From assembly GCA_964187785.1 (NCBI GenBank), contig OZ076414.1, positions 18,724,001 through 18,788,000 of the forward strand: 64,000 nt of DNA, given 5' to 3'. Made by a program: the position numbers and the translations under genes. The DNA comes from Amphiscolops sp. MND2022. Lineage: Eukaryota. Below are positions 5,667 through 46,520 of the stretch, piece after piece. The first letter of the stretch is position 1. Every line of letters begins with the position of its first letter. The notes beneath the pieces were generated by a model, which saw only the letters and a program-made list of their open reading frames with translations, was not told the origin of the DNA and ran no database searches.

Positions 5667-6236
5667 ATTTTTAGTCGGCGCATTTTATCAAAATGAGCCC
5701 GACTATTACAGTGGCAAGGTTTTTTTTAAATTTTTTTTGTTTGTCAGACAACAGAATGTATGCGTAATGGACACTTTTTCTACAGAACTACTAAACTACT
5801 GGATCGGCAAGCGGAAACGCATCTAAGTTAGTGCAAAGGGACCCCCCTTTCGTGTATTCAATTTTAAACGAAAGATACAAAGCCGGACGGGACTACAGGG
5901 ACCCCCTTTGAATTTTTTTCGGCACTGTGCGACTTTTTTTCGAATTTTTTTGTCCCCCTTCAAGTTTTTTTGATATTTTTCAGCAAACTGAAGTTTCAAA
6001 AAGCCCAAAGGGTCCCCCATTTCTAGTTTTTCGGCACTATGAGACTGTTTCAAAACTCGTTTATTTTTTCGAATTTTTATAAATGTCTCCAAAGGGTCTC
6101 CTTCAATTTTTTTTGATATTTTGCAACAAGCTGGATTTTCAAAAAGTCGAAAGGGTCCCCTTTTATAATTTTTAAAAACTTTGCGCTTTTTTGAGCCTTA
6201 GATGTAGCGCCAACTTTAGACGTTCCCGTCCTGTTT
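5667..6236 (+). mobile_element. HINE/DINE-1-like non-autonomous Helentron, copy 1
   Basis: 5' T-run, subTIR AGTCGGCGC and nearby inverted copy GCCCGACTA; internal AAAGGGTCCCC repeats; 3' subTIR-like GCGCCAACT, hairpin AGACG-TTCC-CGTC and TGTTT. Similar copies at 18510, 34402, 37503 and 57111. Confidence 0.7.
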
Positions 6237-6559
6237 CTAATTCCCATATTAAATGGTTTAGACAGTGATTTTGAAAAGCAATTTGATAACTCGAAGAAAT
6301 CACTAAATCTTTGTAAATTTTTGACATAGAAATGCTTCTCTTTGTGCGAATGAATTGTTAGCGATTTGTGCGTCTGGTCACAAATGACAAACACAGTTTC
6401 AGTTATTCCACCAATCTTTATTCACGCTTTCATTTTTACATTTTGTACAAATATGCTGCTGACCATCAAAATATTTGAACTGCCAAAAATGGTTTAAACG
6501 TACGTTTTGTATCTATTTCAATGCTTTATGTTCACAGCCATAGAAACTTCTCAATTTGC

Positions 6560-9859: not shown

Positions 9860-10404
9860 TAATCATTCTGCTGCATGATTGATTATAGCGATTCAGTTCG
9901 AATAATGTTCCCCTGGTCGATTTGACAACCATTCAAGTAGCCAATTAATCAGCTGTTACTGAAACGCTTTTGGTTGAATCAGTCAGCTTTGCTCGGTGCT
10001 GACTTTGACCTCGGTGCTCACTTTGACCGGCAATTGTCCGACCTCTCAATCGACAGTGCATTCAATCGACTTAATCGAACATTATTGGTCATTATTGCCC
10101 AAAATCTGTTTTGTTATGTGTGACATGCTATTACCGCGACTTTCATGCATACCGTAACATACGGATCTAGACAGAGAGACTTGGGCTTGTTTGCCAACAA
10201 AACTCCAATTAGTGCCAATTCATGTTGTTCTGTTTTTACCATAGAGTTCGAGATTGTAACATTAAGCTTTAATTTTATAATCTTTAATTCGCATACAATC
10301 AAAAATTTGATCTGTACAAAATTCATGTGATCGGTGAATATTGAGCAGATCACACAATGTTTCTTCAAAAAATATGCTGAAAAAGTTATCCAATTTTTGG
10401 ATGA

Positions 10405-10900
10405 CCCAGGTTTTCGATCTTTGCGAATCTGTGCAGATCTGCAGGATTTTTCTGCAGGGTTCTGCAAAGATCGTTGCACTGAATCTTGAAGATCATTACA
10501 GATCTGCAAGATCTTTACAGAAGTGTGCAGATATTCCTAAAAGATTTTTGCAGAAATACGTTTTTCTGCAGCTTCTAAGGAACCAATGACTGCATTTTTG
10601 GACTTCTTTAACTACTTCATCAACTCCTTTAGTTGACCAAGGCTCAGTCAGTTGATCACTCAAAAGTCTCGAGAAGAAAAACTTGTCCCCATCACGGTAG
10701 TTATGGTGACTGGAGATTGAGCCGTATTGGTTATTAACATTTTTATTATTCGTTTGACATCGCTGTTTGGTTTTTAGTGTGTTTCTGATAAGGTCATTTT
10801 TCTTCGAATCTGCACATATCTGCAAAGATCTGCAAAAATCCTGCAGATCTGCACATATCTGCAAAGATCTGCACAATTTCGCAAAGATCGAAAACCTGGG
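10405..10900. mobile_element. Complete family C TIR element (CCCAGGTTTTCGATCTTTGCGAA TIR) with 2-bp TSD GA
   Basis: GA|CCCAGGTTTTCGATCTTTGCGAA ... TTCGCAAAGATCGAAAACCTGGG|GA; ATCTGCA subterminal repeats at both ends. Confidence 0.85.
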
Positions 10901-11598: not shown

Positions 11599-12599
11599 TT
11601 TCCCCCTCTGTCTCCTTCTCAATTCTCTTTGCATCTAGTCGAAGAGGGTTTTAGATGCTGAAGTAGTTGGTGGTCCCTTTGGTGTTAGTTCCGGGTCACT
11701 CTGGATAAAGTCTGCCGGTTTCTGCACATTCTCCGGTTGTGGAATTCCCTTGTGTCGGTTCCACGACGATCCTGTAACAAACATAGTTTTCTTTACATTT
11801 ATCCCCAGAAATTTCCTGTATATTGTATACTGCCATATCTATTCGGTTTGTTTACATTTCGGTTAGAGCGTCGAATTATATATTTGTTATTCTTACCCGG
11901 TATCTCTCCGTCGGTATGGAGTTGTAATGCGTCGTCTTCCGGATTGGTCTGTATCGGGACATATCGGCCATTGCGTTCCGATGTATCGTATGTTTGTCTT
12001 CCGATTGTTTCTGGCATTTCTTCGACATCCTCATCATTTTCTTCTGTATCGGTTTCCGTCTTTTTCGGTTTTGTACTATCTTTACCTTGCCGTTGAGTAT
12101 ATCCCGTAGGATTTCGTCCCAGCGGCCATACTTTCCGTCCAGCCACCGTAGACAGTGTCTGTTCTTCGGCTGGATTTCACTGTCAGTTAGCAGTATCTGT
12201 TCCCGCGTTATTTTCTTCTCGGTCTGAAACTATGGACCCGAAAGTATTTTTCGGCTTATTGATTTTCCCGTGTCTGTTTTCACAGTACTTCTGATTCCGC
12301 TTATTGTGGTTTGAATTTTGTTTTGAAATTTTCCTTCTAGGGATCTCTTATTATGGTTCTTTTCTACCAACTGAAAAAGATAGCTGACCGAGTTTTTCAT
12401 TTCCGGTGATTTCAGTCCTTCTGCTACCTGCTTCGCTTCTGTTTTTGTCCGTGCCATCACGATGTGATTCGTGATTTCAACATGCGCGTCGCGGCCAACA
12501 TATATCAGTATCTTCGGCCGTGTTGGTGCTGAAATGGAAAAGTTCTGACCAATCGGATAAATGTGTTTTACCGTCTTTAATGATATTTGTTAATTCAGT

Positions 12600-13382
12600 T
12601 CTCGGTTTCCTTCCGTGATGTATATCGAAGGGTGTTTTCTTTAGTCCCGTGGGTACGGTAAATCAAATTACTCGTAAAGCTCGGTTTATACTTTCGGTTA
12701 GATTTTTTCCGTCTTCCATATTTGCAATTACTAGACTTTTCAGTGTCTGGATTGCTCGTTCTACTGTTCCGTTTCCCGTATGTATTCGGGGTATACAGTA
12801 TTCAATTTCTATATTGGCACCCCCTTTATCGGATTTGATTTTTTCCGGTATTCCTTACAGAAAAAAGTTGCTTGATAAAAATTGTATTACTTCTTTTGTC
12901 TCCAAAGTTTTGCAAGTTTTTACGATTGGCCATTTACTAAATCTATCTACAGCGATTAGTTTTTGGATACCTCCGTGGATGTTTTTTTATTGTAAATTTC
13001 CCGTGAAATCAATTTGTATTTTTTGTCCGGGTTCGGTTAATTTTTCTAATTTTCCGTAGTGTTTTCGCGGTAAATGGTATTTTAAATTTTTACCTGAAGC
13101 AAGGCAGACGGTGCAGTCTTTCACTATTGTTGTCTCAAGGTCATTCTTTTTCTCCGGCCACCAGAAAATTTTGGCTTCGGTTTCCATCTTCGTCAATCCG
13201 GAATGGCCGAAGTGCAATATGTCAAGCAGTCTCCTTCTTAGGTCGATTGGCACGACTATTTGACGTTCGACGAACACAAAGCCCCACCGGATAGATTCCG
13301 GTTTCATAGCGGTTTTGGTGATAAATGTTTTTATATCCAGCATAAATTCAAATACCGCCTTTTCGATATTGTCTTCGGTCAC
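12600..13382 (-). pseudogene. Integrase (HHCC zinc finger and DDE core), disrupted
   Basis: LHFGHSG...CTVC, IQIDFTG, AVDRFSKWP, KIKSDKG and TVERAIQT motifs; internal stops. Confidence 0.88.
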
Positions 13383-14166
13383 TTTCTTGTTCGTTGTCAG
13401 ATTTCACACGATATGATTTTTATGGATGTACTTCGCCTCTTTCCCTTGTGTGTTGTATTTGCTTAGATTGACAACTGGTAGATTGTCTCCACGCATGATG
13501 ATACTGTCTTCTTCCGCATCTTCCGGTTTTTGCTCAATATCTTCTTCCGGATTTTCCTCGGTCTCTTCTTGTATTGGCTGGTATCCTCCGCCTAGCCTGT
13601 TTGATCTTCTCATTGACTCCGCATCAATTTCTGCGATTTCTTCTGGGCTCTTTTTGTTTGGCCGGGATGGTGCGAATATCGTTCTTTGGCTCTGGTGATC
13701 GTACCGGCGTCTCAGGGTACCCTGTCTAGATAGTGCGTTTCTTTGTTCTACTAGTCTTCTCGTGTCCGGACTGTCTGATAAATTCCATGATTTCACGGAT
13801 TGCACCCCAGTGATAGAAGTTTTCTCGGTCCATCTTTTCGTTAATTTCAACAGCTGAATTTTGACTGGTTTTCAAAGTGCTAATATCGGACTGCCCGGAT
13901 TTAGTTGTTTCATTCTGTTCGGTTTTGTTCAAGTTGTTTTTGTTCTCGAATATTCCATTCGTTTGTGACTGGTTCTTTTCATGCTCATTTTGTGTCTCGG
14001 TATTGTTGTTGCGTCATTTTGTTCTGTTTTCGGTGCGTTTTGATTAGTCGGCGAATATTGGTCCGTATTTCAAGTTCAATTCAGCTTGTTCGGTTAATAT
14101 GGTAATTACGTAATCTTCATCGTAATTTTCTTCCGGCGTGGCTCCCCCTACCGGATTTCTTCTCAA

Positions 14167-15340
14167 TTAATATGTAAATTTCAAAAAACTAACGGCAATA
14201 TGTTGTAATGATATATCAAAAGGTGGTAATGGGTCCAACCACTGTGTTAACCTCGCACTATATTGTTTATTCCACCGGTTCCGTTTAATTATTGGTTCTA
14301 AAGCTTGATGATCTGTATATAGAAGTACATTCTTTCCGTAAAGGTTAAATCGGAGCTTTCCTAATCCCCACACGACTGCTAATAGTTCTGAGTCACCGAT
14401 GGATTATTTCTTTTTGGTTTCGTTTGAGTGTCTGCTACCGAATGCTATCTGTTTGGTGTTTCCGTCGTGTTGTTTTACCATAGTGTTATTCCGAGTCCGG
14501 TTGTACTAGCGTCCGTTGTAACTATGTTATCTTTTTTTTTGCATAGTGTGCTAGGCATGGTCCTCCGGTCAACATTTGTTTTATTTTTCCGAAATCTTTT
14601 TGTTGTTCTTCTCCCCATATCCATGGTTCAATTTTTTTCAATAGTTTTCTCAGTCGGTCTGTCCGTTCCGAACGTTTCGATAGAAAGTTCGCCATATATT
14701 GTGTCGCTCCGAGAAAGAATTTCAATTGTTTTGTGTTCTCCGGTGGTTTCAACCGTAGTATTGCTTCGACTTTTTCTTCGTTCGGTTCGCTTCCGTTTTC
14801 ATCAATTCCGTGTCCCAGCCATTTTGTTTGATTCATAAAGAATTCGGACTTTTTTACTTGCCCGGTATCCCGCATTTTCTAATTTGCTAAAGATATCGAA
14901 TAATTTTTTCTAATGATCATGTCTGCTCCCTCGGGTTACACCAATTATATCATCTAACCAGGTGTACTGTAATCAAGTGTTCGGTCAATTTTTTTGAGTA
15001 TTGAGGGTATATCGGCGAGACCGTAAAACCGTTTTTTGAAACTGTAATTTTCGCTGACATTTCCTCCGGTTATTGCAAATACGCATTGTCGGCTTGTTTC
15101 TTCCAACAGTTTCATTTGGCCGTAAGCGTAATCCAGATCCATTTTGGAAATGAATAATTGCATTGTTCGGTCACGAGTAATTTCTACCGATATTTGGTTT
15201 AATAGTTCTTCCATGTTCGGCATGTGGGGTCTCTTTTTATTGCAACTGTCTTTCAGTTTTCGGGAATCTAGTGCTATTTTCACTGATTTATCGCTTTTTC
15301 CTGTTATGACTACTGGTGATACAAAGCAATCTTCATCCAC
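14167..15340 (-). pseudogene. Reverse transcriptase and RNase H, frameshifted
   Basis: SPVVITGKSDKSVKIALDSRKL, KMDLDYAYGQ, FYGLADIP, WLDDII (14949-14960), KWLGH and LLYTDHQAL...RLTQW motifs. Confidence 0.9.
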
Positions 15341-15619
15341 ATCTTTTTGTTATTTATAGATGTCCTGACTTTATTAGTCTTTCTATTCCACGTCCCTCAT
15401 CTTCTTGTACATGTAGGGGTACTGGTCTGGCTTTTTGTTTTACCGGATAATATCCCAGTTTTTGTTGAATGTTTTTTTCGGCGTCTTTTACCGTCTCATT
15501 ATTTTCGAACAGTTCCGGAACTTTATTGAATACTTTCTCGCTTTCTGATTATTTGTTTTCGGCCAATTGTATTCTGCCAATTGTTAATTTGTATTTCTTA
15601 ATCCCATCCATTCCGAGTA

Positions 15620-15870
15620 GAGGTGTTATGTCTAGTCTTTCGGTTATCAATATTTCCATTTTTTGTTTGTTGTTTTCGTATTATAGGTTTACCGGGATTT
15701 TTTCCCGGAATTTCACTTCATTTTATTTACATCTTGATATCTGTTTGTGATTTTCTGTATTCGTCCGACTTTTCCTCTGGTGGCATTATTGTTATCGGTG
15801 ACCCGGTATCAATTATGAATTCTTTCTTTATTCCGTTTACTTTCACTGTTTCCGTGTAGTGTTTGTTCTT
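15620..15870 (-). pseudogene. Retropepsin protease
   Basis: Minus-strand ATTGATACCGGGTCACCG reads IDTGSPITI; downstream TPLLGMDG-like motif. Confidence 0.75.
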
Positions 15871-15961
15871 TTCTTCGATTTTCTTTATTTTTTATGTGGT
15901 GTATGCTTTCGTCAAATTCGCTTGATGTCTAGTTCGGTCCTCCATTACTTCTTCGGTAAGT

Positions 15962-16816
15962 TTATTCACTGTTCGGTAGTTGGTGTATTTTTGTCTGCAC
16001 ACTTTCGCGTAGTGTCTTTTTTTCACAATTATTGCAATTTGTTTTAGTCGCTGGACACTTGTGCATTGGTGTCCAGTTTTGTGCTCCGCAATATCTGCTT
16101 GGTCTATTTACTGTTGTTCTGTTTTTCGGTCTTGTACCGAATCTCTCCATTCTCTGTATTGGTTGTTCTTTTATCACCTGTTTTTCTTTTGCGGAAATCA
16201 GTGTTTCCGGAATTGTAATTTTCTTGTTCTTTTTCTCAGGTGTTCTGTTTGATCAATTCAATCGTTTTTTATTCAATTCCAATGTTTTTTTCATCAGTTT
16301 GTCTCATAATTTTTTATCGGTGATCGCTGTCATGTATTTGGATATCAGTAATTCTTCAGCTGTGTATGCACTGCTGTGTATGCACTTGAAAATGCACTCT
16401 TCTTCTATTTCAATTAGTCTTCTCCAGATTTCTTCGGGAGATTCTTCTGTCTGTTTTGCCCAGAAGAAGTCTCCGCGGTTGTGGTAGGTTTTTCGTTTCG
16501 GTAAGTAGTATTCAAGGAATAACCGAATCAACTTTTTGATGTTAATGCTATCCGGATCTGTTTTATATTCGGCTCGGGTGATTTGACATAATGTTTCGGG
16601 TCCCACTCCCCAAATAAAATCTTCTTGGATGAGTTTCTCTTTCTCTGTCCATCCGGTTTCGGTGACGTTTTCTCCTTTTCTCAGTGGTGTGATCTCATTT
16701 TGTGTTCCCGTTTCGTGAACTGTCGGAATCGTTCTAACCACTGTTTTGGTGTGAACACCGAGTTTCCGTCTGCGGCCTTTGCTTGTAGATTCGGTACTGT
16801 AATTTTTTTCAGCCAT
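15962..16816 (-). pseudogene. gag with Cys/His knuckle region, frameshifted
   Basis: ORF 16304-16816 (YHNRGDFFWAKQ...WRRLIEIE..C) and CGAQNWTPMHKCPATKTNCNNC. Confidence 0.8.
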
Positions 16817-17798: not shown

Positions 17799-17998
17799 TC
17801 AGGAACAGTTTCCGTTGTTGTAGCAGTCCAGTGTTGGAACGGACATGTGGTTCCTGAACAAGTTCCCAGGGTCGTATTTACTTTTCACTCGCATCACCCG
17901 CTGCTTGTTTTCCTCAGAATAGTGCAAGTTCATCAGACCTTTCACTCCTTGACCTCCGTCCCATTGACCTTCAACAGAAATTTGAGTAGGAGTACTTA
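17799..17998 (-). CDS. BBE-like oxidase exon 9 (terminal, BBE domain)
   Basis: Acceptor TTTCACAG; ...HYSEENKQRVMRVKSKYDPGNLFRNHMSVP...NCS*. Confidence 0.9.
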
Positions 17999-20900
17999 CT
18001 GTGAAATATACACTTGATTTCATTTCCATAGACATGTATGCGATTTCTACATGATGCTAAAAAAAACAAAAAATCTGATGCTAATGTTTTTTATCGGATG
18101 ATTTTTGTGGCAAATGTGTTGATTTTTCCTCTGAATACTTACCGAAAAACATAATTTCAATCAATTCAGATAACTAAGATAAATTCTTATAATTATAATT
18201 CCTATTCTTACAACATTTTTCACATTCCCCCTTTACAAGTAACAGCAGGAAAGATCCCAATTTTTTCAAGGAGACGGAATAATTTTACTTGAGCAGTGAG
18301 AAATCAGCAATTTTTTAAAATAGAGATAAAAAGTTTCCTTGGGTGAGTGAATTAAAACATTCAGTTACTAGGGTGTCTTTCCAATCGTTATTGAACCATG
18401 AAGATTTGCAGGTTTTTCAAATCAAAAAACGTCCAAGCCTGTTTGTCTGCAGCTTTCACAGACTACCTCTTGTATTTACTTGGATGGTATGCCCTGATAT
18501 TTTTTCATGTTTTTAGTCGGCGCATTCTTACAAAATGAGCCCGACTATTACAGTGGCAAGTTTTTTTTTCGTCAGATAACAGAATGTATGCGTAGTGGAC
18601 ACTTTTTACAGAACTACTAAACTACTGGACCGGCAAACGGAAACGCATCTAAGTTTAGTGCAAAGGGTCCCTTTCATTTACTCCCTTTTTAACGTAAGTT
18701 ACAAAACCGGACGAGACTATAGGGGTTTTAGTTTTTTAGACTATTTAGTTTTTTCGGCACTGTGCGACTTTTTTTCGATGTTTTTTGTCGCCAAAGGGTC
18801 CCCCCTTCAAGTGTTTTGATGTTTTCCAGCAAACTGAAGTTTCAAAAAGCCCAAAGGGTCGCCCCTTTCAAGTTTTTCGGCACTATTTCAAAGTTCTCAT
18901 TTTTCGTTTTTTTTTTCGAAAATTGTTTCAATTTTTTTCTCAAAATGTCTCCAAAGGGTCCCCCTTCATTTTTTTGATATTTTGCAACAAACTGGACTTT
19001 CCAAAAGCCCAAAGGGTCCCCCTTTTACAATTTTAAAAACTTTGCGCTTTTTGAGCCTTAGATATAGCGCCGACTTTAGACGTTCCCGTTTTGTTTCTTG
19101 TTGATACCCCGTACCTTCGGAGAGGTCTTCGTATCCCCTGTAGGAGTAGTTGGTGTGTGGTCTGATGATATTCCAGAAACCCCTCTGGAACTCCCTTATG
19201 TGTTCGAGCTTCTCGGGGTCTTCGTGATTTGCCGGGAACGTAGTTATGATGGCCCGACATCCCTTGCCACTGTATACTCCGAAATACTCGTCTGCCAAGC
19301 CGAGTTGACTATGCGTCAAAATTTCGAAAATCAAGTAAGCTACGAACGTGTCATGAATTTGTACGACGCGTCTTCAACTCAATCTCGACCGTGATTTGGT
19401 ACTCAATCGAAAATCGAAGCACCAGCTGAACGCGACTTTCATCACTTTTTTGTATCTTTCTGAAAGATCCCGTAGCATGTATTCTAATTTTAAAAACTGC
19501 AAATCGATTTGGGATCGGACTGATAGTCGATGAGAAAAGTTCCGATAGTTTTGATTTACGCTAACTGGATAAATTCTCAGAAAATAACCTTAGGAAGAAC
19601 AATCGGAAATCCATTAACAACAGAGAATTTGAAATCTTGCAAACTTCAGGCAACAGGCATCTTTTTTTTAAAAAAAAATAACTACGTATGCTATGAGAAT
19701 CACTTTTTGTCTGATCTGGAGAAGCTCTACGAATAGTTCCAGAAATAGTAGAATTTATAGCAAAAAAGTCGAATATTTCCAACGTTGACGTTTTTGTGCA
19801 AGTTTCCGGTCTTTTTGTTGATATAAGTTTATGAGCTACGTTTAAGCCTTAGAAAACTATTCCAGGGCGTAGAATATCCCGATGTTTATTGGGGACGTCT
19901 TTTCCAGCTTTTTGCTACTTGATAAATGGTTGTGAATACAAGTCAACCCGGGAAGCTTCGGCCTCCAAACAACTCGATGTTGACTCCGAAGTCGGAATCT
20001 TCAAGGTCAGGGTAGCTGATAAAATGGTCTTCCAATTCCTCAAGAGCCTCTATGGGAATATTCTCGCCGCATACATAACCACTCATCATTCCGCTGTAAT
20101 GAGAATTTCCACTCACTCGGAAATCCCTCGCTTTGGTTGATTTGTAGCCTGCAGAAAAAAAAACAAAAACTGAATAAAACATGAGTCTTTCAATTCGCTC
20201 AGGGCCCATTTTTGTGAAATTGTAAATGAGTAGCACAGTGTCAAATCAATAAACAGGCGGGAGACTCTGGAAGTTTTTGACGTGCAAAATTTTTTGAAGT
20301 GCAAAATATTGAAGCATTTAAAGGGGTCTTTAAATTAAGGGTTCTGAGTATCTTTTTGGCACAAGGGAAAAAAATAAGAAGAATCTCACATGGTTTAAAC
20401 AAATTTGAAAGAAGGACTCTGTTGTCCATTCTAGTTTACCACAAAATGGGAACAAAATTAGATAGCCTAAAGGCAGACACTTGGCATTCCTTCAAGAAAT
20501 GAGGTTATTTATAAGTTTTTTTACCATTGAGGACAAAAATTACGCAGCTTCAGGAAAACTATTTTCTTCTCTGAAATGCTACGGTCTCGTCTCGTAATTC
20601 TGAAAATTTCCCGAAAATGCAGTCTTCTGAATTCTATTTTGCGTGAAAAAGCGCGGCCCGAACTGTCTAAATAGTTGATGAAAAATGTAATTCCTGAGAG
20701 AAAATGTTTCCATTTTGTGAATATAAGTAGAGCCACTTTTTGCAATTGTTAATATAAAACTTTTCTGCATGACTTAGATTTTTTTGCGTTCGCAACTTTA
20801 CAAGGCCGCCTGATTCTATTCTGAAAACTTCGCACAGTTTTTTGAGCTCCCAGGTTTTTGATCTTTATGAATCCGTGTAAACATGCAGGGTTCTGCAAAG

Positions 20901-23900
20901 ATCGTTGCCCTGAATTTTGAAGAATTTTACAGTTGGGCAGAATCTTTACAGAAGTGTGCTAATTTTCGTTAAAGATTTTTGCAGTTATGATTTTCGGCAG
21001 CTTCTGGGGGGAACAAATGTACTGCATTTATGGACTTCTCCAACTACATTTAGCTCAAGTATTTTAGCTCAGTCAGCCGAAACTTTCTATAACTCAAACT
21101 TCTCGAGCAGGAACGTTTGTCTCCACCACCGTAATTTCGGTGACTGAAAAATATTCGGTATTGGTTTTGCCAATACGGTTTACGTTTTAATTTGTCTATT
21201 TCACTTGATCTTTCCAAGAAGTAGTTGTTGAACTTAGATAGGCTCGTTTGCAATATTAACTTCGTTTTGGCTCATGGAAATAGACGAGTGGCGATCGTCT
21301 GGGTTGGTAGACGCGGTGACAAAGTGTTGTTGTTGTTGTAATGTTTCGGTAACATGGTTTTGTTGTAATTTTGATAATTGATGGTAACTCGGAATACGTT
21401 ATAATTTTTTAAAGGCATTTTTTGGCTCTGTAAAGATCAGTACATTTGATAGATCTGCTGAGTTCTGTAAAGTTCTCTACAGATCTACACAGATTGCTGC
21501 AGAAAAATTTTTCATTTTTTGGACAAAAATTAGATTCCTCACCAGTTCTAAACATTTTAGTTATTCAAATGACATCTCTGTGAGATTTTTATCGTGTTTC
21601 TGATCAGGTAATTTTTTTCTTCCAATCTGCACATATCTGCAAAGTTCTGCAAAAATCTTTCGCAAAGGTGGTGAACTTGAATAGTTTTATATCACTTTGA
21701 AAGAAATTGTTTCACGTTTTGAAAACTTTACAATTGGTTTTTTCTATAATCGTTCCCAGAAAAGTTTTCAAGTCAATATTTTAAGTTATAAGTTTTTAAG
21801 TAATGATATATAATTTACAATTTAGTGATTATATCAAAGCAAACGTAACATTATAACTACAAATTTTCACCCGTTTTGACATTCAATAAAAATACGCCTG
21901 AGAAGATTTAGCCAATTGTTCCTAATCCATTCTCGAAGCTTCTTTAAGTTTTGTGCTTCCAGCTTCAAAAACATAAATCTGCCTTGAGGCTTTGTTAGTT
22001 TCTCTCGATGATATTTCCTGTCAAAAAAATCTGCAATTTCAAGGATATCTAGTACTGACAATCATGTATAATATATATATATATATATATGTATATATAT
22101 GTATATAATGATGATTATAGCCTATCCGGGGCGTTCAATGGAATCCCAAAATACTTCAAAATTTAATTCCATGCATTAACCATGCCAGGTCACCGGTAAA
22201 ACGACCTGAATTTTCACTTTCCGACTACCTACTCTAGTCAAGACTGCTGCAACTTTCTACAGGCCTGCATACAGGGTAATTTTTTATAAAAGCTAAAAAA
22301 CTCAGTAAAAACTGCAGTTTCGTTTCCACTATTGAAATTAGCAGATAAAATCAATGGAAATTTCCGCACCTGTGGCGTTCTGAAGTGAGCCTTCCCCGTA
22401 AGTGAACTTGTACAGGTTTTGATACAGGGTTTGATACAACTTGTGGCTGACCACGTTCACGTTTCTCTTCTTTGCCTCTTCCACTAAGTGGTCCATGATG
22501 TTTAAGCCTTTGGTGGGCGAGTTGAGAATTTTACCTGGAAATGACACATGATTTTCTATGAAATGTTTTTATCAAAGAACCGCGATTTGGAATTATCGAT
22601 GACGGGGTGATTATCAAATACCGACCAGTTATTGAGCTATCATAGTTCTGAATTTCTTTACATTTTTCATCTTCGAGATTTGATTTTTATCCAACATTGG
22701 GACTTTTGGGACTTTCTGAGGAATCGATAGAAACTAGTATGTTCGTCTCAGATCTAGGAAACATGTTTTTATTGTTAAAAAAGTCCAGTTTTTGCGGTTT
22801 CAATTTAGCTCTTTTTTCCGTAACCTTTTCAACCAAAATGATACCAAATTGCTCTTTCATTTTGACTTGTTTCAAAACACATTACTAAACTAGTATTTCC
22901 GTGTTTCGAAAAACCTTAAATAGACCAAAAAAGCCTTGAATAGGTCAAACTTTCAAATATTCCCAAAATATGTCGAATCTGTTGGCATACGCTTTTTGTG
23001 AACAATAAAACATCGATAAAAATCAAACATTAAAACATATCGTTGGTTAAAAAAATTTTTGACGTTTTAAAACATCACGGTGCTCAGGTGACGTCTTCGT
23101 GATTTTGTGGAACGTCGCAAGTTACACTCAAGATTCATCGTTCAAAGCACCAGTTTGTTTTTCATGAAAATAAAGATACATTGGTGGACCTGATATATTA
23201 CGGATCGTTCAAGTTGAAAAGATTCTAAAATGGTTTATTTCGTTCACATGTTTCTCAATTCTTACCTGTGAGTGCCCCTTGGATGAGGAGGCCCTCCTGA
23301 GTCAAGTAGGTGTACAGGTACATAACGTCCTCTGTCAGGGTATGAGCCACACTGAAGAAGTAGTGCAGCCATTCTGCCATGGAAGACTTGGCAACTTCGA
23401 ACCGCAAGAACCCGTAATGGGGGTCCAGTGTTTCTACCTATAAAACGGTATGAGGAAAACTTGCAGAAAACAATTCGTTGGAATTAAAACTGGTCGAAAA
23501 CTAACTACCGTATATTCCGGCGTATTAGCTCCCCCTCCGTATAAGCCCCTCCCCAAACTTTTGACTACTAAAAATTCGAAAAAATGGGGGGGGCTTATAC
23601 GCCGGAAGATACGGTAGTCTAGTAATTATTATTTTATCTCATTCTTTTCATAGAACTTCGGCGAAAGAAGTGGGCTTTTGTACTTTGTTTTCCTGATGCA
23701 ACCACATTCAATGAGCTTCTGATTTTGTCATTTCGCTCAGTCATTGTGATGAGTATATAAAAACAGTAGATATGCCCGTCGAAAAGTGTTCAGTTGCAAC
23801 CAGAAAGCAGTTACTTTTCGACGTTTTTTCGGAAACAGTCTCTTGAAATTTGGTGTTTCTCACAAATTGATCAAATTTCTTTTTTTCTAAATATGCAAAG

Positions 23901-26900
23901 TGTTTCTTTCTTCAACTTACCTTGAAAGTGACGTGTGTGATGACCCCAAATGAAGATCCCCCAGACCCTCTGAGGGCGTCGAACAGGTCCGTGTTCTCCT
24001 TGAAGGATGCATTCACTGCTTTCCCGGAGGCAGTCACGATCTCGTAGTTCCTCACAGTGTTGATCATCAGGCCGTACTTGCGGGTCGAGAACCCAGTTCC
24101 CCCTGTGGATGAGAGACCCCCAATTCCCACATCCGGACAATCACCTGAAAAAAAAACAGGCTTAGTTGGAAATGCCGTGAAATTTTTGTAAGCACATGTA
24201 TAAAATGCAGTCTAATTTTTGAAAAAAAAAACAGAAAAATCAGGGACCCTGCATGGAAAATATTCTGAAACTTCCCTGCATCTTGGAAAATCTAGGAAAA
24301 GTTCCCTGCATACCGATGGATACCGATGTCACTGGCATATGCTGTCCGTGATTTAAATTGTTGTTTGAATATTCTTCTACATCATTGTTCAAAAATGGAT
24401 CATCATGAAAGGCAACGTAAACGGAAGTCATAATCTTGCACGAATATCCTTACAATGCGTTAAACACGGGAATTCAAAAACCGAATGGTATGTTGAAGCG
24501 AAGAAAAATCACGAAAAAAACATTGAATAATTGAAACGTATGTCAGATACAGAACATAATATTGAATATTTATGAGGATGGCATGAATTAAGCCTGCAAT
24601 TTCAAACGAACAGGCTGAACTTTTTTTGATGATTTCCCAATCCAAGTGCCTTGTAAATTTGAGAGCTTGAAGCATCCGCCATAACTTATAAGCTTATAAC
24701 TTATCTTCTAAAATAGGTTATAAGTATATAGGTTATAAGTTCAGAAATAATAATTGTTTTTTAAAAACTTATAACCCATAAACCTATAACTTTTAAGGAT
24801 CTATACATATATGAAAGAGTTTTTCATGCTCTCAGAAACTTTCCCCGGTTGCCCCCCCCACTAACCCCCAATAAGAAGAAAGTTATGCTTCTTAAGGGCT
24901 TGGAACACTTCGCCGACCCTGTTGCCTACCCCCAGCACCACCTGTTGACTGCCCTTCATCACAGATATGCGCCTCATCCTCTTCATGTCCACGATGAACC
25001 CCCTCTCCACAAACGAAGACCCACTGAAGCTGTGTGCCCCGGACCTCACCCTGAAGGCAACGTCTGGGTTGTCCGCCAGACATTTCACTACCTGTTAAAA
25101 CAAGCGTATTCATATTTATATTGATATACAGTAGTGATTCTGGAAGAAGCCACATAGCACACGGAAAGAAAGCAAATAAGCACATATCATTGGCTGATCA
25201 AGGGCTCACGCGCCCATTTCATTGTTCGAGAGCGATTTCCAAAAACATCATTTTTCAGATTTTTGAATTTTTGACCCACTTACAATTTTTTGATTTCAAA
25301 TTTCTCCAAACATTTCAAATCTGACAATATAATTTTTACTCGAGAATATTCTAAATTGCATTAGTATGAGCTTGTTTGAAGTTGTTAAACTTCGAAATCG
25401 TATCTTAATACATGTATTGACGAAAAAGTCCAAATTTACAGCGTATTTTTCTACCATTTTAGGATGATTTCTAAATCAAAACATATCAAGGGCTTCAGTT
25501 AAATCAGGGGAGTCGATTGAACATAAAATTTATCCAAAATTCCAAGCAAAAGTTGGCTAAAAGTGAGAAAAACATCAATTTTGACCTAAATTTGGTTTAA
25601 AATGGCCTATCGTAACTTCTACAATTTTCATTGCATAACCTTCAATTGAATATATTTGTAAACTACATAAAAATCTAAGAAATTTTCACTTTTATTATTT
25701 TTGAAAAATCGCTGCTGTCTCAGAGATATTCGGATATTCGATTTTGAGATTTGCCTTTTGATGCTTTTAGAAATATCACTACTGTACAGTACAGTGAATA
25801 AGAAATCGTCCCTATGGCGTTCTCAGCCAGTTAAAATTGTTCATTTGCTCTCACTTTCAGTTTTGATTGGTGCATCGAGACAAATTCATGTAATTTGAGT
25901 TTGAGGAAATTTTACCTTTTGAGCTTGATATCTCGGAAAGAGTTGATCATTTTTGAAATCAAAATATATCAATCAATTCAAAAGATTTGTGGGAGTTAAT
26001 TGAGCATAAAGTTTGTCAAAAAACTGCGGATAAAGAGGTCAAAAATTAGAAAAAACGGCAAAAAGTCCCAAATTTGCTCAAAATCAGCTATTTGTAACTT
26101 TCTCAATTTTCGTTCAGGAATTTTTAAAAAATACTGATGTAAACCAGATGAAATTCTAAAAAAAACTTTTATATCTGATATTTTTCAAAATTTCCAAACT
26201 GATTTCAAGAAAATCGAGCCTAAAATCGCCCGTGGGACGTTTTCTTAATCACAGTACTGTATCGTAAATTTACAATGAAGTTATTGTTACATTGAACTCT
26301 TCGGGAAGCATGTATCAACTAGAGCTTCTAGTTTTCATCATTCATCATATACAATTTGTTCACAACAAGGAGGTGAATTTTTGGTCTTTTAGTCCTGATA
26401 AAGCTCATGAGAAAATTTTTTGAAATAGGTTTTTGAGAGACTTCATTGGCGATATGTGGACCAATTTTGCAAACATTTTGTGTTTCTAGTGAAAGTACCT
26501 TTTTATGGTCCTCAGTTGAAACTGCTTGAATTTTTTCAAGTTTTTGTAAGTCTGCATGCAAATGCATCGTGATTTGATAGAAATCTGGCAGAAACATCCA
26601 AGAACAAAAACTTCACTGAACCGTTGCAGTCTTGAACGCCTGTCTGTTTTTCTGTTAATAATTGAAACGCATACATCCTTACTTTGTATTTGTCAAGTTT
26701 TCTAAAAGAGATTTCTAAAATGGGCGACAATTCCAAGGCACGAAATTTTCCAAAATTTCAGAACTATTTTTCAATTCAGCTGAGACCTTATCAATGTTAC
26801 CGCCATCTTAATGCAAAACACTTCAGTCTCTTTATAGATTTCAAAGCAGTCATGCAATTTCACTAACGGTGATTAAATAATCATACTATTTGAGAAAATC

Positions 26901-28242
26901 AAGTCTGAAAACAAATTGATCGAAACTATGAAAGAGTAGAAGTGATCTCAGTTATTACAGAAATAGCGGAGACTGCATTGTAATTCCACAAAATTTCTGC
27001 AGGTAAACCCCTCCAGGTAAACTTTTCCATTCTTTGAACAATTTGGTAGCTTTTTATGCATGAAAGCAACTTGAAACTTTTTTCAGCAGATTCAACTAAG
27101 GGTTGCAAAAATTACAATCAAAATGCCACATTTTGTTGAAGCGGTTTGGAACTTTCTGCAAGCTGCTTTTAGGCAAATGATGCACATTTGTTCAACGTAG
27201 GAGTGCAATGCAGTTTTCACTATTTCAATCGAAACTGAAACAATTTCTACTTCTTCACCGTCTTGTCTGTCCATTTCGTCGCACAGTTTCGTAATAATTT
27301 TTAATACTCTTAGCATGAGAACATTATTGGCTAACTTACAAAAATAATGAATTTGACTCACGGCAGAGGTTTCCTCGGTGGACGTTGGGAAAACGAATCC
27401 GGGCGTGAACTCACAATGATCACAAGACCCATTGGTCCTGTAGTAATAGACATAGATGTTGCTGCTGTGGAAACAGCCAATCACAGACTCGTATTCCAGC
27501 GGCAGCTCACATGGTTTCTGAAACATCAAAAATTGACATGCTTAGAAAATATGTCACCAAATATGGAAACTTCTATGGGCTGAAACTTTTTTGAAAAAAG
27601 TTTTGAAAATACTAGATTTTGAAAGAAATGATGAAGCTTGAGTTTTATTAGGCGATATCATTGAGCTTAGTAAGCCTTACGAAACAGGGTTGCTTTTGAA
27701 CCCTAAGGATTTAATAGTTTTTCAATGATAGATGATGTTTTTCAAAGATGATTTTCCAATAATTATGATCTATATAAATAAAATTAGTTTTCAATTTGTC
27801 ACGCTGTGAAGTGGGTCGCTGACTTAAGCTAATAAAGGCCTTTTAACTGAAATTTTTTATATATGGCTTGATTATAACCAAAGTTGACTTCAGACTCTAA
27901 GTAAAAAAGACTCCAGGACAAAGTTTTGATGTTAAAAGCAAACTTGAAAAATGAATGGAAAACTAGGAAATTAATGTAGACTAATCTTACTTTCCCGAGG
28001 AGACAAATTGTGTCGTCAATCTTGGAGTAATCGTCGGGTGATTGTTCCGGCTGCAGATTCGAAGTCTTCTCTTTCTTGTTTTCAATTTTGGTGTGAGAAG
28101 CACGTTTGGAAAACTTGGGAAACTTAACATCGCTTAACGTCCACCAAAGTACAAGGCCAATGATTATCGCCAAAACCGGGTAAAAGGAAAAGAATAGAGA
28201 CGAACTCTTTTTCGAACTTTTTCCCGAACGCCATGACGCCAT
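17799..28242 (-). CDS. BBE-like FAD-linked oxidase (FAD_binding_4 and BBE domains), 9 exons, 590 aa: join 28242-27991, 27517-27362, 25091-24866, 24144-23921, 23437-23266, 22534-22370, 20148-19948, 19291-19115, 17998-17799
   Basis: All introns GT-AG with matching phases (0,0,1,0,1,1,1,1); exon sum 1773 nt open to TGA. Motifs P-x-S-x-EE, RVRSGAHS, GDCPDVGIGG, GGTGFSTRKYGL, LFDALRGSGGSSFGVIT, SYRGYEDL and RVKSKYDPGNLFR. Confidence 0.9.
18510..19096 (+). mobile_element. HINE-like element copy 2, in intron 8
   Basis: Same subTIR, hairpin and core as 5667-6236. Confidence 0.75.
19115..19291 (-). CDS. BBE-like oxidase exon 8
   Basis: Acceptor GGCAG, donor G|GTACGG; DEYFGVYSGKGCRAII...SYRGYEDLSE. 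Confidence 0.8.
19948..20148 (-). CDS. BBE-like oxidase exon 7
   Basis: Acceptor TTCTGCAG, weak donor G|GTTGAC; ...IPIEALEELE...VNIELFGG. Confidence 0.75.
20234..20832. mobile_element. Possible decayed TIR element beginning CACAGTG (Transib/CMC-like)
   Basis: Left CACAGTGTCAAATCAATAAACAGGCGG; degenerate inverted CCGCCTGATTCTATTCTGAAAACTTCG at the right. Confidence 0.3.
20849..21678. mobile_element. Family C TIR element, older and longer copy in intron 6
   Basis: CCCAGGTTTTTGATCTTT start; both ends colinear with 10405-10900; right TIR degraded. Confidence 0.7.
22066..22107. repeat. (TA)n microsatellite
   Basis: Run of TA with GTA interruptions. Confidence 0.9.
22370..22534 (-). CDS. BBE-like oxidase exon 6
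   Basis: Acceptor TTTCCAG, donor G|GTGCGG; KILNSPTKGLNIMDHLVEE...LQNAT. Confidence 0.8.
23266..23437 (-). CDS. BBE-like oxidase exon 5 (absent from the ORF track)
   Basis: Acceptor TTTTATAG, donor G|GTAAGA; VETLDPHYGFLRFEVAKSSMAEWLHYFF...LLIQGALT, open throughout. Confidence 0.85.
23508..23614. mobile_element. 107-bp Tc1/mariner (pogo/Tigger-type) MITE with TA TSD, in intron 4
   Basis: TA|CCGTATATTCCGGCGTATTAG ... CTTATACGCCGGAAGATACGG|TA. Confidence 0.85.
23921..24144 (-). CDS. BBE-like oxidase exon 4 (Cys FAD-attachment motif)
   Basis: Acceptor TTTTTCAG, donor AAG|GTAAGT; GDCPDVGIGG...RKYGL...LRGSGGSSFGVITHVTFK. Confidence 0.93.
24866..25091 (-). CDS. BBE-like oxidase exon 3 (His FAD-attachment motif)
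   Basis: Acceptor TTAACAG, donor G|GTTAGT; VVKCLADNPDVAFRVRSGAHSFSGSS...IVDMKRMR. Confidence 0.93.
25129..25784. mobile_element. TA-flanked MITE 1 (TIR CAGTAGTGAT), intron 2
   Basis: TA|CAGTAGTGAT ... ATCACTACTG|TA. Confidence 0.7.
25787..26259. mobile_element. TA-flanked MITE 2 (TIR CAGTACAGTGAATAAGAAATCGTCCC), intron 2
   Basis: TA|CAGTACAGTGAATAAGAAATCGTCCC ... GGGACGTTTTCTTAATCACAGTACTG|TA. Confidence 0.8.
26330..27340 (-). pseudogene. Highly decayed hAT-type transposase remnant in intron 2
   Basis: Frameshifted ...IFATL.(V)ESAEKSFKLLSCIKSY resembles the hAT dimerisation motif (TLPvs.aSAERSFS.LK.IK.Y). Confidence 0.45.
27362..27517 (-). CDS. BBE-like oxidase exon 2
   Basis: Acceptor GTTTCAG, donor GCC|GTGAGT; KPCELPLEY...FTPGFVFPTSTEETSA. 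Confidence 0.85.
27991..28242 (-). CDS. BBE-like oxidase exon 1 (basic N-tail, TM/signal anchor, stem)
   Basis: ATG at 28242; MASWRSGKSSKK..FFSFYPVLAIIIGLVLWWTLS; donor AAA|GTAAGA in phase 0. Confidence 0.8.
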
Positions 28243-33560: not shown

Positions 33561-34401
33561 ACAAGCTGTCAACAATGTAGTGAAATAGAATAATTAATGA
33601 AAGATGTGAAAATACAGCATTTGTGCTCGTTACACAAAACGCGGCTGATGGATATGTCTATCAGCACCCAAAAAGTGACATTCATAACAAGTTTTACAAG
33701 GTCGGCGATTTTTTGAAGTGTTTTTACCTCACTTAACATTTAAATTTGACTTTTAAAATATTGATCTCGAACCTCGCCAATTATTGAAGCATTTCAAACA
33801 ATTCGAAAAAAAACTAGATGATCATAAACTTGCGTTTCTGAAAATGAACACGGAAATGAAAATATTGAAATTTGCGACATCTTTCAGCAACCTCTGCAAT
33901 ATTGAAAATGCAGAAAAATTTAATGTTCAATGCGTGAAAGTATTGTGTTCTTAAGTGTGACAAAAATAGTGAGAAAGTTACGAACTGCACAGATTTTGTT
34001 TCTTGCTGAGATGAAAGAAGTTGAAGGAATCTGACAGGCGCTGCTCTCATCTTTTCACAGAGGATGCCTGCAACATTGATGTTTGTTTTGAGTCTCCAGT
34101 TACTTGCTAGAATTGATTTTGCCTTTTAATCTCTTTACTCTTACCTTTTCTCCCAACTTGCACTAATCACACAATCAAAACTTGTCACAATTATCCCTTT
34201 TCTAATTTATTCAATCTGCAGCTCGCACGTCATCTATTTCATTAAAAATCGACAGAAAAGTTTACCAGGTAACTTTTTCAGCTAGCTTGAAATTATTGTC
34301 TTTTCCATAAATTTTCCTATGCTTGTTATTAGGTTGTGAAATGAAAAACAATTTTGATTTTTTGATACCCTATCGAGGCCATTTGGCTTTCGAGCATAAA
34401 T

Positions 34402-34683
34402 AAACAAGACAGGAACGTCTAAAGTCGGCGCTATTTCCAAGGCTCAAATAGCGCAAAGTCTTTGAAATTGTAAGAGGGGGACCCTTTGGGCTCTTCGAAA
34501 ATCCAATTTGTTGCAAAATTTGTTATTAGGCCTATCTCCGATATCGAGAAGTAATTTGCAGCGGTATTGTTTTCCCGAGTAAACGTCACAAGCATAGCAT
34601 AAGATAGGAGGAAGTAATTAACTCTAAAAAACGCGTTCTGATTTTTAATGTCTGTCAGAAAAAAGACTGGTTTGGGTATGCAC
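34402..34683 (-). mobile_element. HINE-like element, 3' portion with extra segment
   Basis: AAACAAGACAGGAACGTCTAAAGTCGGCGCTA terminus; shares an extra segment with the copy at 37503. Confidence 0.7.
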
Positions 34684-37243: not shown

Positions 37244-37502
37244 CAGTATGCGATTTTTTTCCTGAAGTTATTCAACCGAAGTGTCGCTTTGATTTTTAGG
37301 AGGAACAGCATTTTGCGAGCAGAGGGCCACATTGTTTTTTGGGCACAATGCGACTTACCGAAGAATTTTCGAAGACTGGGTATCTTTTTGGCACTGTAGA
37401 AAAGTAATTTTCGAGTTTTTTGGGTATCCCTTCGGTACTTTCCGGCACTGCAAATGTGATAAAATTTTCCCAATAGTGTCGTTTGCATCTTTATATTACT
37501 TG

Positions 37503-38085
37503 TTTTAAGTCGGCGCATTTTATCAAAATGAGCCCGACTATTACAGTGGCAAGTTTTTTTCCGTCAGACAACAGAATGTATACGTAGTGGACACTTTTCA
37601 CAGAACTACTAAACTACTGGACCGGCAAGCGGAAACGCATCTAAGTTAGTGCAAAGGGTCCCCCTTTCGTGTACTTAATTTTTAACGAAAGATACAAAAC
37701 CGGACGGGACTACAGGGTCCTCCTTTCAATTTTTTGGCACTGTGCGACTTTGTTTTGAATTTTTTGACGCCAAAGGGTCCCCTTCAAGTTTTTCGACATT
37801 CTGCAGGAAACAGAAGTTTCAAAAAGTCCAAAGGGTCTCCCTTTTCTACTTTTTCGGCACTATGAGACACTACCCAAACCAGTCTTTTTTTCTGACAGAC
37901 ATTAAAAATCAGAACGCGTTTACCGCTGCAAATTACTTCTCGATATCGGAGATAAGCCTAATAACAAATTTTGCAATACACTGGATTTTCAAAAAGTCGA
38001 AAGGCCCTCCCTTTTACCTTTTTAAAAACTTTGCGCTTTTTGAGCTTTAGATATAGCGCGGAGTTTAGACGTTCCCATCTTGTTT
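37503..38085 (+). mobile_element. HINE-like element copy 3
   Basis: Same subTIR, core and 3' hairpin as 5667-6236, plus an extra internal segment. Confidence 0.75.
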
Positions 38086-39529: not shown

Positions 39530-40197
39530 TGTAACGGCATCCTGTTATCAACGAAAGTTTGAAACTTTTTGAAAATTCCGTTCAAACCTGAGGTGGCGCC
39601 CGAACATAACTTTGGCGAAGCACCTGTCAGCAGAACGTGTAAAAAGACGGTGAAAGAAGCCGCCCCGCGAAGGAGAGCGAAACAATCGCGAGTAGTGACA
39701 GTGAAACAAAAACAAGCCAAAACCATGGCAGAAATCCAGGTTTTTTCAGTGCTGAACCCAAAAACATCATGACAGCCTGAGGACTGTATCTGTGCCTAGG
39801 GGTTGTGCCCAGCTCGAGCGCTGGTGCCGTGCCGCCCCATTGTCCACAGTTTTCGCCGAACTGGACTCTGTTATCGTAATTAGTGTGCTTTTTGTGTGTT
39901 TAGATCATAAAATGCTCGAGGGATACTTCATGTTCATGTTGCATTTACCCAAATTCTCACTGTAGAAATTCAGTTTTTTACAACCTTGCCGTTTTTATAA
40001 GCTATCTACGCGGTGGTTTCGAATTTCAGAGCAATACCCGTGATTCGTAGCAATTACAAACTGTTATCAAGCCAGAGAGCGTCCTTAAAGACGGGTCCCC
40101 TCCTTAGGAAGACAAAATGAGCTGATGTCATGGTGGTTTGTCCCGGACCATATCCATGGTACCATTCCTCCACTATCGCACCGCTCTTGCCGTTACA
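39530..40197 (+). repeat. 5' LTR
   Basis: Direct repeat of 54651-55361 with a 9-bp terminal inverted repeat. Confidence 0.92.
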
Positions 40198-43100: not shown

Positions 43101-43273
43101 CAATGGATCCAAGACACGCGTGGTGGGTTTACGATGTCACCTCGTACGGAAGGGTTCTGGCCCCATTCCAATACAACGGCTGTCAATGCTACGCCTGGAT
43201 ATGAGGGTGCTCGACGGCACCCGACGACGTCAGCAGTCACGGCAGCAAAGCTACAGACGCCATCCTGGAAAGC

Positions 43274-45300: not shown

Positions 45301-45389
45301 CAACGGGGATGGCTGCACGTACGGTACCCTTGGAAGACGACCGGGTGTTGATGCTCGAACCAGCTGAGCAACCAGCCTTCTACACACCC

Positions 45390-46100: not shown

Positions 46101-46189
46101 GGCGTATCAAGTTCTCATTGACTTAACGTCGATGAGGATCGTGGTGCGCATGCCCATACAACCAGTCTGGCATCACGCACATACTCAGC

Positions 46190-46520
46190 TAGGTGATCCC
46201 ATCTTAGCGGTCCCAGGTGTTTTGGACCAAAATTTAGTATTGCAACCCTTCGAGCGTACGTTGGTAATGGCAAAAGTGGTAACTCCTGACGTGGAACCAC
46301 TGGTGTTTCAAAATGTGGTATTGAATGCAGCTATCGCAGATGCGTCACTGCAAAATGTTGTGTTTTCAGAGGACTGCGTTGCGGCTGCCGGTGGGACAGG
46401 CCATGTCTTCGTCAGCGTGACAAATCTGACTAGCAACCCACATAGCGTCCGTGGAGGCACACACTTGGGTGCCGTGGTACCCGTATCCCTCGTTTATCGT
46501 GCTGTCCCACATCAGCTGGC
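46190..46520 (+). pseudogene. Beta-rich insert between PR and RT (dUTPase-like by inference)
   Basis: LVLQPFERTLVMAKV...VFVSVTNLTSNPHSVRGGTHLGAVVPV pattern. Confidence 0.45.

Follow-up and report, generated by a model that had tools for sequence, protein, structure and literature searches.

A berberine bridge enzyme-like oxidase gene with nine exons, probably of foreign origin, in the genome of Amphiscolops sp. MND2022

This study deals with a stretch of 64,000 nucleotides (nt) from Amphiscolops sp. MND2022 (assembly GCA_964187785.1, contig OZ076414.1, positions 18,724,001 to 18,788,000), referred to below as the window, and with a gene on its minus strand, at 28242 to 17799, that encodes a flavin-dependent protein of the BBE-like type (BBE: berberine bridge enzyme). 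Judged from sequence comparison, this gene adds a new animal representative to an enzyme family that is well known, and it is probably of foreign origin, from a donor of putative type. It is best explained as a functional gene of the host animal, most likely an acoel flatworm or a close relative of one, intact and under selection, whose expression is predicted. The gene consists of nine exons and eight introns of 473 to 2270 nt, all with GT-AG borders, and the spliced coding sequence of 1743 nt is translated into 580 amino acids (aa) with zero internal stops. An earlier note on this DNA had described nine exons and eight introns with canonical splice sites at the same coordinates, which was borne out; the product length of 590 aa given there was not, and the difference is probably caused by one alternative acceptor, e.g., 22555 in place of 22534.

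The exons were modelled with the related protein P0001 as the tblastn guide, whereby the frame-preserving GT/GC-AG pairs were enumerated at each homology break and those pairs were picked that gave a colinear and gap-free alignment to the relatives. The parts of the gene, in positions of the window, are as follows:

27991..28242, minus strand: exon 1, with the ATG at 28242-28240, a basic N-terminal tail, the transmembrane signal-anchor and a hydrophilic stalk.
27362..27517, minus strand: exon 2, with an N-terminal cap rich in cysteine (C87, C99, C116, C119), plus the beginning of the domain that binds flavin adenine dinucleotide (FAD).
24866..25091, minus strand: exon 3, first part of FAD_binding_4, with RSGAH at 25046-25032 and His156.
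23921..24144, minus strand: exon 4, second part of FAD_binding_4, with GDCPDVG, Cys214 at 24139-24137 and Val217 at 24130-24128.
23266..23437, minus strand: exon 5, with which the substrate-binding domain begins (45.6% identity and E 1e-12 in tblastn of P0001).
22370..22534, minus strand: exon 6, substrate-binding domain.
19948..20148, minus strand: exon 7, substrate-binding domain (tblastn: 45% identity, E 5e-14).
19115..19291, minus strand: exon 8, end of the substrate domain, with RP.TNYSYRGYED and Tyr516 (YSY at 19148-19140; tblastn: 58% identity, E 4e-23).
17799..17968, minus strand: exon 9, BBE segment, with FRN (aa 562-564) at 17858-17850, Cys573...Cys579 and the stop codon at 17801-17799.
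27990-27518, 27361-25092 and 24865-24145, minus strand: introns 1-3, common to the relatives.
23920-23438, 23265-22535, 22369-20149, 19947-19292 and 19114-17969, minus strand: introns 4-8, found within the family in this copy only.

The start codon is preceded by an in-frame stop seven codons upstream. Exon 1 is not regarded as an artefact, because its membrane-spanning segment is found again, together with a DYSK.D..IC motif, upstream of exon 2 at the Symsagittifera roscoffensis loci L005 and L006 (E 0.003); the likeness to exon 1 at the loci L002 and L003 is a weak match of an 11-residue motif (E 1.5). Exon 2 is kept as a separate exon with 41-53% identity in L002, L003 and L005-L008. Exon 5, which the earlier note had included although the list of open reading frames (ORFs) breaks it up, proved to be real, with 46-57% identity to the relatives. 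Four relatives have the last six exons as one continuous ORF, and against them all junctions are gap-free; when precisely these introns are cut out, the ancestral frame is restored. The spliced protein aligns from aa 64 to 568 to a BBE-like protein of Geosiphon (E 1.7e-34) and is 64% identical to its closest relative, P0168; by these alignments, its homology lies far beyond chance. In addition, Logan contigs were obtained from four sequencing runs, which represent two further samples of the same organism. They are 95-99% identical to the window and bridge the exon-intron borders, in two samples at ordinary depth, and intron-skipping joints were looked for in the contigs of the four runs with no result. 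As the borders are bridged without such joints, the four runs are DNA, and since independent DNA runs cover the locus, neither the locus nor its introns are an assembly artefact.

The Pfam search was run on each exon piece separately and not on the whole spliced protein. PF01565 was found on the exon-3 piece (24864-25094) with 41.9 bits and E 9.9e-11 and on the exon-4 piece (23915-24211) with 32.9 bits and E 5.9e-8 (cut-off 26.4 in both cases), and PF08031 on the exon-9 piece (17802-18056) with 31.3 bits and E 2.1e-7 (cut-off 20.6), as expected from the domain content proposed earlier. The motif RSGAH is located at aa 152-156, where His156 is present as the residue at the site of the 8-alpha-N1-histidyl FAD link; the related protein P0151, which the window protein matches there, was aligned by HMMER with its ‘rvrsgahsfsg’ to ‘rtrsgghdyeg’ of MaDS1 and tetrahydrocannabinolic acid (THCA) synthase. 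The second motif, GDCPDVGIGG, starts at aa 212 and contains Cys214 at the 6-S-cysteinyl FAD site and Val217 at the Cys+3 position, the oxygen gatekeeper; it is identical residue for residue to the motif of P0151, which aligned to GDCPGVGIGG of MaDS1. A valine at Cys+3 marks the O2-reactive members of the BBE-like enzymes, and the titles of PDB entries agree with this rule, as the I153V variant of Phl p 4 is entitled ‘glucose oxidase’ and the wild type ‘glucose dehydrogenase’. The segment YSYRGYED with Tyr516 is invariant in the family, and YSYRGYEDL of P0151 aligned to AYLNYRDL of THCA synthase and MaDS1. In PpBBE1, a cellobiose oxidase of the moss Physcomitrella, the equivalent tyrosine, Tyr461, is assisted by an aspartate and has been proposed as the catalytic base in the oxidation of the anomeric carbon (PMC6001459). 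Finally, FRN at aa 562-564 corresponds to the FxN motif of the BBE segment, of which the Y/FxN motif is the hallmark (PMC11375781).

At the N-terminus, a hydrophobic helix spans aa 16-36 (28197-28135), with a Kyte-Doolittle maximum of 2.19 at aa 14-32. The protein contains five N-x-S/T sequons and eleven cysteines, of which the C-terminal pair is invariant in the family (C456/C462 in alignment A2); the many cysteines and the five possible N-glycosylation sites fit a location in the secretory lumen or on the surface. Taken together, we read the sequence as that of a predicted type-II anchored, lumen- or surface-facing, bicovalent-FAD and H2O2-releasing oxidase of the BBE-like subfamily (VAO/PCMH).

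The structural comparison was based on the AlphaFold model of P0151, which is 54% identical to the window protein and was modelled with a predicted local distance difference test score (pLDDT) of 89. It superposes on BBE, PpBBE1, glucooligosaccharide oxidase (GOOX), chitooligosaccharide oxidase (ChitO), xylo-oligosaccharide oxidase (XylO) and EncM, among them the PDB structures 3fwa, 6eo4, 3hsu and 6y0r, with template modelling (TM) scores of 0.76-0.81, and the 30 Swiss-Prot proteins that match its fold best belong to plants, fungi, Bacillus and Dictyostelium, none of them being from an animal. The carbohydrate oxidases GOOX (1zr6/3hsu), ChitO (6y0r), XylO (5k8e) and PpBBE1 (6eo4) share with it the two-domain VAO/PCMH fold and the BBE segment (TM 0.79-0.81), and give the lowest root mean square deviation (2.9-3.8 Å), which in this model is only a hint of a carbohydrate substrate. 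Further common features are the His and the Cys at the two FAD attachment sites, the conserved region of the catalytic-base tyrosine and the secretory location, which for the acoel proteins is predicted. However, the identity to these carbohydrate-oxidising enzymes is only about 20-22%; the acoel proteins possess an N-terminal membrane anchor instead of the cleaved signal peptide of the GOOX/ChitO/XylO/PpBBE1 type, a family-specific C-terminal Cys...Cys loop, and a G in place of the N of the usual YxNY motif.

The best sequence matches among solved structures are plant enzymes, namely the reticuline oxidase EcBBE, THCA synthase, AtBBE-like 15, Phl p 4 and MaDS1 (E 3e-32 to 1e-23), with which the acoel proteins have the cysteinylation motif GDCP.VG.GG and the C-terminal FxN/YxN motif in common, as well as the valine at Cys+3 of the oxidase-type plant members. 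However, the full-length identity amounts to about 20-24%, the plant enzymes are soluble proteins of secreted or vacuolar location, and the acoel sequences do not cluster with the one plant sequence that the tree includes. The list of PDB sequence matches ended with L-galactono-1,4-lactone dehydrogenase and cytokinin dehydrogenase (E about 5e-8). The animal enzymes GULO, DHCR24, AGPS and LDHD/D2HGDH have the same FAD_binding_4 superfamily fold, but none of them is among the best 30 Swiss-Prot fold matches, and to our knowledge the animal enzymes of the VAO family have neither a BBE segment nor bicovalent flavinylation. By sequence, the gene is thus clearly not a standard animal gene of the VAO family.

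With regard to the mechanism, the short basic N-terminus would remain in the cytosol, and one membrane-spanning helix would expose the catalytic domain to the secretory lumen or at the surface of the cell. FAD would be attached doubly, via His156 and Cys214. A hydride from a substrate C-H group would be transferred to the flavin N5 with the assistance of the conserved Tyr516 region; the carbon in question would most likely be that of an alcohol or hemiacetal in a sugar, an oligosaccharide or a small metabolite. As oxygen access is controlled at the position held by Val217, O2 would reoxidise the reduced flavin, with the release of H2O2. The suggestion of an H2O2-generating oxidase, already made in the earlier note, fits the motifs, and the carbohydrate or secondary-metabolite substrate named with it is a prediction.

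Relatives of the gene were searched for in two large protein collections. Using the exon-4 piece, HMMER found one close relative with 75% identity, P0001, among 1.84 billion representative proteins, in addition to about 9,600 more distant family members at E ≤0.001. The cluster of P0001 includes XP_063713013.1, annotated as ‘uncharacterized protein LOC134841144’ of S. roscoffensis. In word-indexed searches of 5.8 billion proteins, with XP_063713013.1 and an acoel profile as queries, five close clusters with 49-64% identity were detected; beyond these, there was only a handful of distant fungal or metagenomic matches. The next best matches of the window protein are about 25% identical. The close clusters are located on the NCBI chromosome OY783236.1 and in the ENA assemblies ERZ25878734, ERZ25071366, ERZ25071359 and ERZ26859043. 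One and the same protein occurs in ERZ25878734 and ERZ25071366, both of which look like S. roscoffensis; ERZ25071359 contains two paralogues, and P0168 is found in ERZ26859043. One S. roscoffensis copy lies antisense inside the span of a 5580-aa gene with epidermal growth factor (EGF) repeats on the 84.7-Mb chromosome OY783236.1, and other loci of the family are flanked by ORFs of the BEL/Pao type and of the long interspersed nuclear element (LINE) type (RVT). The closest relatives thus stand in a chromosome-scale assembly of an acoel, in agreement with the animal-type genome assumed previously. Since the synonymous sites are saturated even in comparison with P0168, the species of the window differs from the species of all the relatives. 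According to these searches, the family is a small multigene clade found so far only in acoel-type assemblies; a literature search for papers on the BBE-like family in acoels found none.

Two observations concern individual members of this clade. The S. roscoffensis gene of XP_063713013.1, which is also the gene of P0151, has an in-frame stop in its exon-2 equivalent (L002, about 9902-10054; L003, 665-817), which replaces a conserved cysteine (…YRQLME*LDS… as opposed to …YRRLVDCFHS… in other copies) and is seen in the NCBI chromosome and the ENA contig alike. This copy may be truncated or decaying, and the stop would explain why the NCBI model of XP_063713013.1 starts downstream and does not include a membrane anchor. 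Furthermore, in ERZ25071366 (L005, 7960-9057 and 10001-11098) the last exon of P0166 is tandemly duplicated, the two nearly identical copies being ~2 kb apart, and the assembly of L006 has a single last exon of P0166, which indicates a difference in copy number or haplotype.

Three trees were constructed for the phylogenetic placement: a quick tree of 85 rows, a labelled tree of 45 rows, and a tree of 41 rows from which the two closest outsiders, P0130 and P0170, had been removed. The acoel sequences form one clade in all three trees with a support of 100/100, on a stem of 1.6-2.3 substitutions per site. In the labelled trees, this clade attaches beside a fungal group (Microthyrium, Melampsora, Hyaloraphidium and two unlabelled proteins) and outside the groups of Actinomycetota, Bacillus and Gillisia. 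The presumably fungal FAD_binding_4 proteins P0130 and P0170 show the highest identity outside the acoels, 42% over ~160 aa of the FAD-binding domain, but the likeness is limited to this domain, and Pfam finds no BBE domain in either of them. P0130 is encoded on the 4.8-Mb chromosome CP019480.1 (GCA_023278565.1) and has an intron and a DUF1996 neighbour, because of which it is considered eukaryotic and probably fungal. Nearest by path length are metagenomic proteins, some of them annotated only as ‘FAD/FMN-containing dehydrogenase’, and one protein from Herbidospora. A search for labelled prokaryotic relatives with the acoel profile gave zero confirmed matches, as the patterns were too specific. 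The constraint ‘acoels + all labelled bacteria’ was rejected by the approximately unbiased (AU) test (p 1.6e-62); the result is not relied on here, as the constraint also displaces unlabelled sequences.

The published papers that name PF08031 deal with plants, fungi, oomycetes and bacteria, and the single animal case is a candidate for horizontal gene transfer (HGT) in a nematode transcriptome. Because the acoel clade stands beside fungal sequences and outside the labelled bacteria, horizontal acquisition is the most economical reading, and on this basis we consider it fairly probable that the gene was acquired from a non-animal source. This would have happened once and long ago, from a eukaryote of a fungus-like type, and introns and the anchor exon would have been gained afterwards, along with duplication within the acoels. 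The foreign origin suggested in the earlier note is supported insofar as the matches contain no labelled protein of another animal and the fold matches are non-animal; the transfer itself stays putative.

Several points weigh against an acquired, functional gene. The long stem makes the placement of the acoel clade fragile, and no donor clade encloses the acoel sequences in any tree. When P0130 and P0170 are included (45-row tree), the acoels join them at 97/95, a grouping that was flagged because two long branches meet in it, and that the 85-row tree did not recover. The matches of three large searches contain no label of a non-acoel animal, with most matches unlabelled and the search not being taxon-wide, and the absence of the family elsewhere in animals therefore rests on lists of top matches that are mostly unlabelled. 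The motifs and the fold were mapped on the relative P0151 and not on the window's own protein, and the gene model is known from DNA alone, the four runs all being DNA. Moreover, host taxonomy could not be confirmed via the flanking genes as had been proposed, because the ten ORFs of at least 130 aa outside the gene had zero Pfam matches; the acoel identity of the window is read from the relatives of this gene.

The main alternative to acquisition is vertical descent, in which a BBE-like gene was already present in the opisthokont ancestor, was kept in fungi and, among animals, only in acoels or a few lineages with poor sampling, and was lost many times elsewhere, the long stem being the result of the fast evolution typical of acoels and not of a transfer. 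The position of the acoel clade would suit it, adjoining the fungi as the sister kingdom and nested in no single donor group, and the family occurs widely among eukaryotes, for instance in Dictyostelium, plants and fungi. Its members have the old introns 1-3 in common, and accelerated sequence evolution is known for acoels (PMC11521371). However, independent losses would be needed in nearly all other animal lineages and in the unicellular holozoans, and neither the 1.84 nor the 5.8 billion proteins gave a match labelled as a non-acoel animal, although most matches are unlabelled; the published range, with a nematode HGT candidate as its sole animal mention, likewise speaks against it. Vertical descent is therefore judged unlikely, although it deserves to be taken seriously.

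Concerning the state of the gene, the comparison with the gene of the closest relative gave a proportion of nonsynonymous differences (pN) of 0.20 and a proportion of synonymous differences (pS) of 0.75, the latter being saturated, and the ratio of the corresponding rates (dN/dS) was 0.09-0.22 where dS is measurable. These values indicate that the gene is under purifying selection, and together with the stop-free frame and the retained flavinylation motifs they uphold the intactness claimed for it earlier. In other individuals, four variants were observed in exon 6, two synonymous and two missense, with no stop or frameshift. A decaying or unexpressed relic that is intact by chance, in which the additional introns are unremoved insertions, would be compatible with a gene known from DNA runs, with the transposon-like repeats in introns 6 and 8, and with the in-frame stop of the P0151 gene, by which members of the family can evidently decay. 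However, removal of all eight GT-AG introns restores a colinear, gap-free and stop-free frame of 580 aa, pN falls far short of pS, the residues for catalysis and flavinylation have been retained, and the listed exon variants in other individuals are free of stops and frameshifts, so that a relic appears highly improbable.

The gene is physically part of the host genome, as is evident from its eight spliceosomal introns, its host-like G+C content, the repeats it has in common with the window and its presence in the DNA of two further samples. On either side of the gene, the G+C content amounts to 34-38%, and the window contains no runs of N. That the contig or the gene derives from a contaminant or symbiont (alga, fungus or bacterium) would agree with a protein family typical of non-animals and with flanks in which no animal gene is recognisable, but has a negligible probability in view of the even G+C content, the eight spliceosomal introns, the four further occurrences of the intron-8 repeat in the window, the relatives within the EGF-repeat gene span and beside Pao/RVT elements on the 84.7-Mb S. 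roscoffensis chromosome, and the ordinary depth of the locus in two other DNA samples of the organism.

The exon-intron structure differs strongly between this copy, with nine exons, and its relatives, with about four. In L001-L003 and L005-L008, exons 2 and 3 each have a counterpart that forms an exon of its own, with an unchanged position in the protein, and exons 4-9 correspond to one uninterrupted last exon in six of six relatives, which come from at least three other assemblies. The single-exon counterpart of the region of introns 4-8 is found at 10001-11143 in L001, at 10001-11122 in L003, and in L005-L008. Introns 1-3 are therefore old, because they are common to all relatives, and introns 4-8 are private to this copy, so that the statement in the earlier note that the gene had gained eight introns has to be corrected: introns 4-8 are either five gains here or the remainder after one to two wholesale, 3'-biased losses elsewhere, both of which are possible. 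The root inside the acoel clade is a trichotomy in one tree, and in another P0168 is outermost at 98/78; a clade of the window protein and P0168 is not rejected by the AU test (p 0.35). The two have a 3-aa deletion in common, which hints that they may be sisters.

An origin of introns 4-8 from introners was considered and rejected, as terminal inverted repeats at the intron ends were not above those of shuffled controls, and the repeats cover only part of introns 6 and 8, without extending to both splice sites. At introns 4, 5 and 8, the splice consensus by itself would produce the short AG|GT direct repeats. Within intron 8, nt 13-607 consist of a repeat of ~600 bp, of which four more copies or fragments occur elsewhere in the window; the copies are located at 18508-19100 (intron 8), 5668-6238, 37501-38085, 34399-34519 and 57105-57742, are 69-94% identical, and give reiterated ‘SPKGPPF’-like units in six-frame translation. 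A second dispersed repeat at 20817-21657 (intron 6) is found again 10 kb away at 10373-10886, where it is 72-88% identical. In introns 3, 4 and 6, short segments attain a k-mer depth of 10^3-10^4 in the DNA runs, which indicates elements of very high copy number in this genome.

In the remainder of the window, a block of ~14 kb within 40000-56000 has a G+C content of 44-53% as opposed to 34-39% elsewhere. The region 12000-16000 shows a strong AT skew of -0.37, being T-rich on the plus strand, and both its strands carry ORFs of 130-150 aa, several in all; neither a Pfam match nor a tandem repeat was found in it, and it probably represents a decayed mobile element in antisense. The search of the 64-kb window with Rfam gave no match. 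In tblastx and blastn comparisons of the window with the loci of eight relatives, the exons alone matched, with no synteny and no common repeats.

In a tentative scenario, which we regard as possible but doubtful as a whole, the gene, encoding a flavin oxidase of the secreted type, would have been transferred in ancient times from a fungus-like (or algal) eukaryote to an acoel ancestor, where a membrane-anchor exon was added and a small family arose. The enzyme would release H2O2 at the surface or in the lumen from sugars or metabolites, in photosymbiotic acoels maybe those of the algal partner, for defence or for the control of symbionts, and five introns would have been gained within 1.1 kb of coding sequence after the split from the nearest sampled relative.

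The BBE-like enzymes are a well-known class, and gene transfer into animals is well documented; for this reason, and because the donor is putative and the expression predicted, the claim made here stays moderate. In the literature searched, BBE-like oxidases are described from plants, fungi, oomycetes and bacteria, with roles in alkaloid and cannabinoid synthesis and in the oxidation of cell-wall sugars. A conserved, selected, intron-bearing and membrane-anchored acoel family would extend the BBE-like oxidases to animals. The copy with nine exons, compared with its four-exon relatives, offers a clean case for weighing intron gain against intron loss mediated by reverse transcriptase. If the acquisition is true, the gene would be a candidate foreign gene in the Xenacoelomorpha, a lineage of phylum level with a gene content relevant to the early evolution of the Bilateria. 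Its product would be a candidate H2O2-producing enzyme for acoel defence or photosymbiosis.

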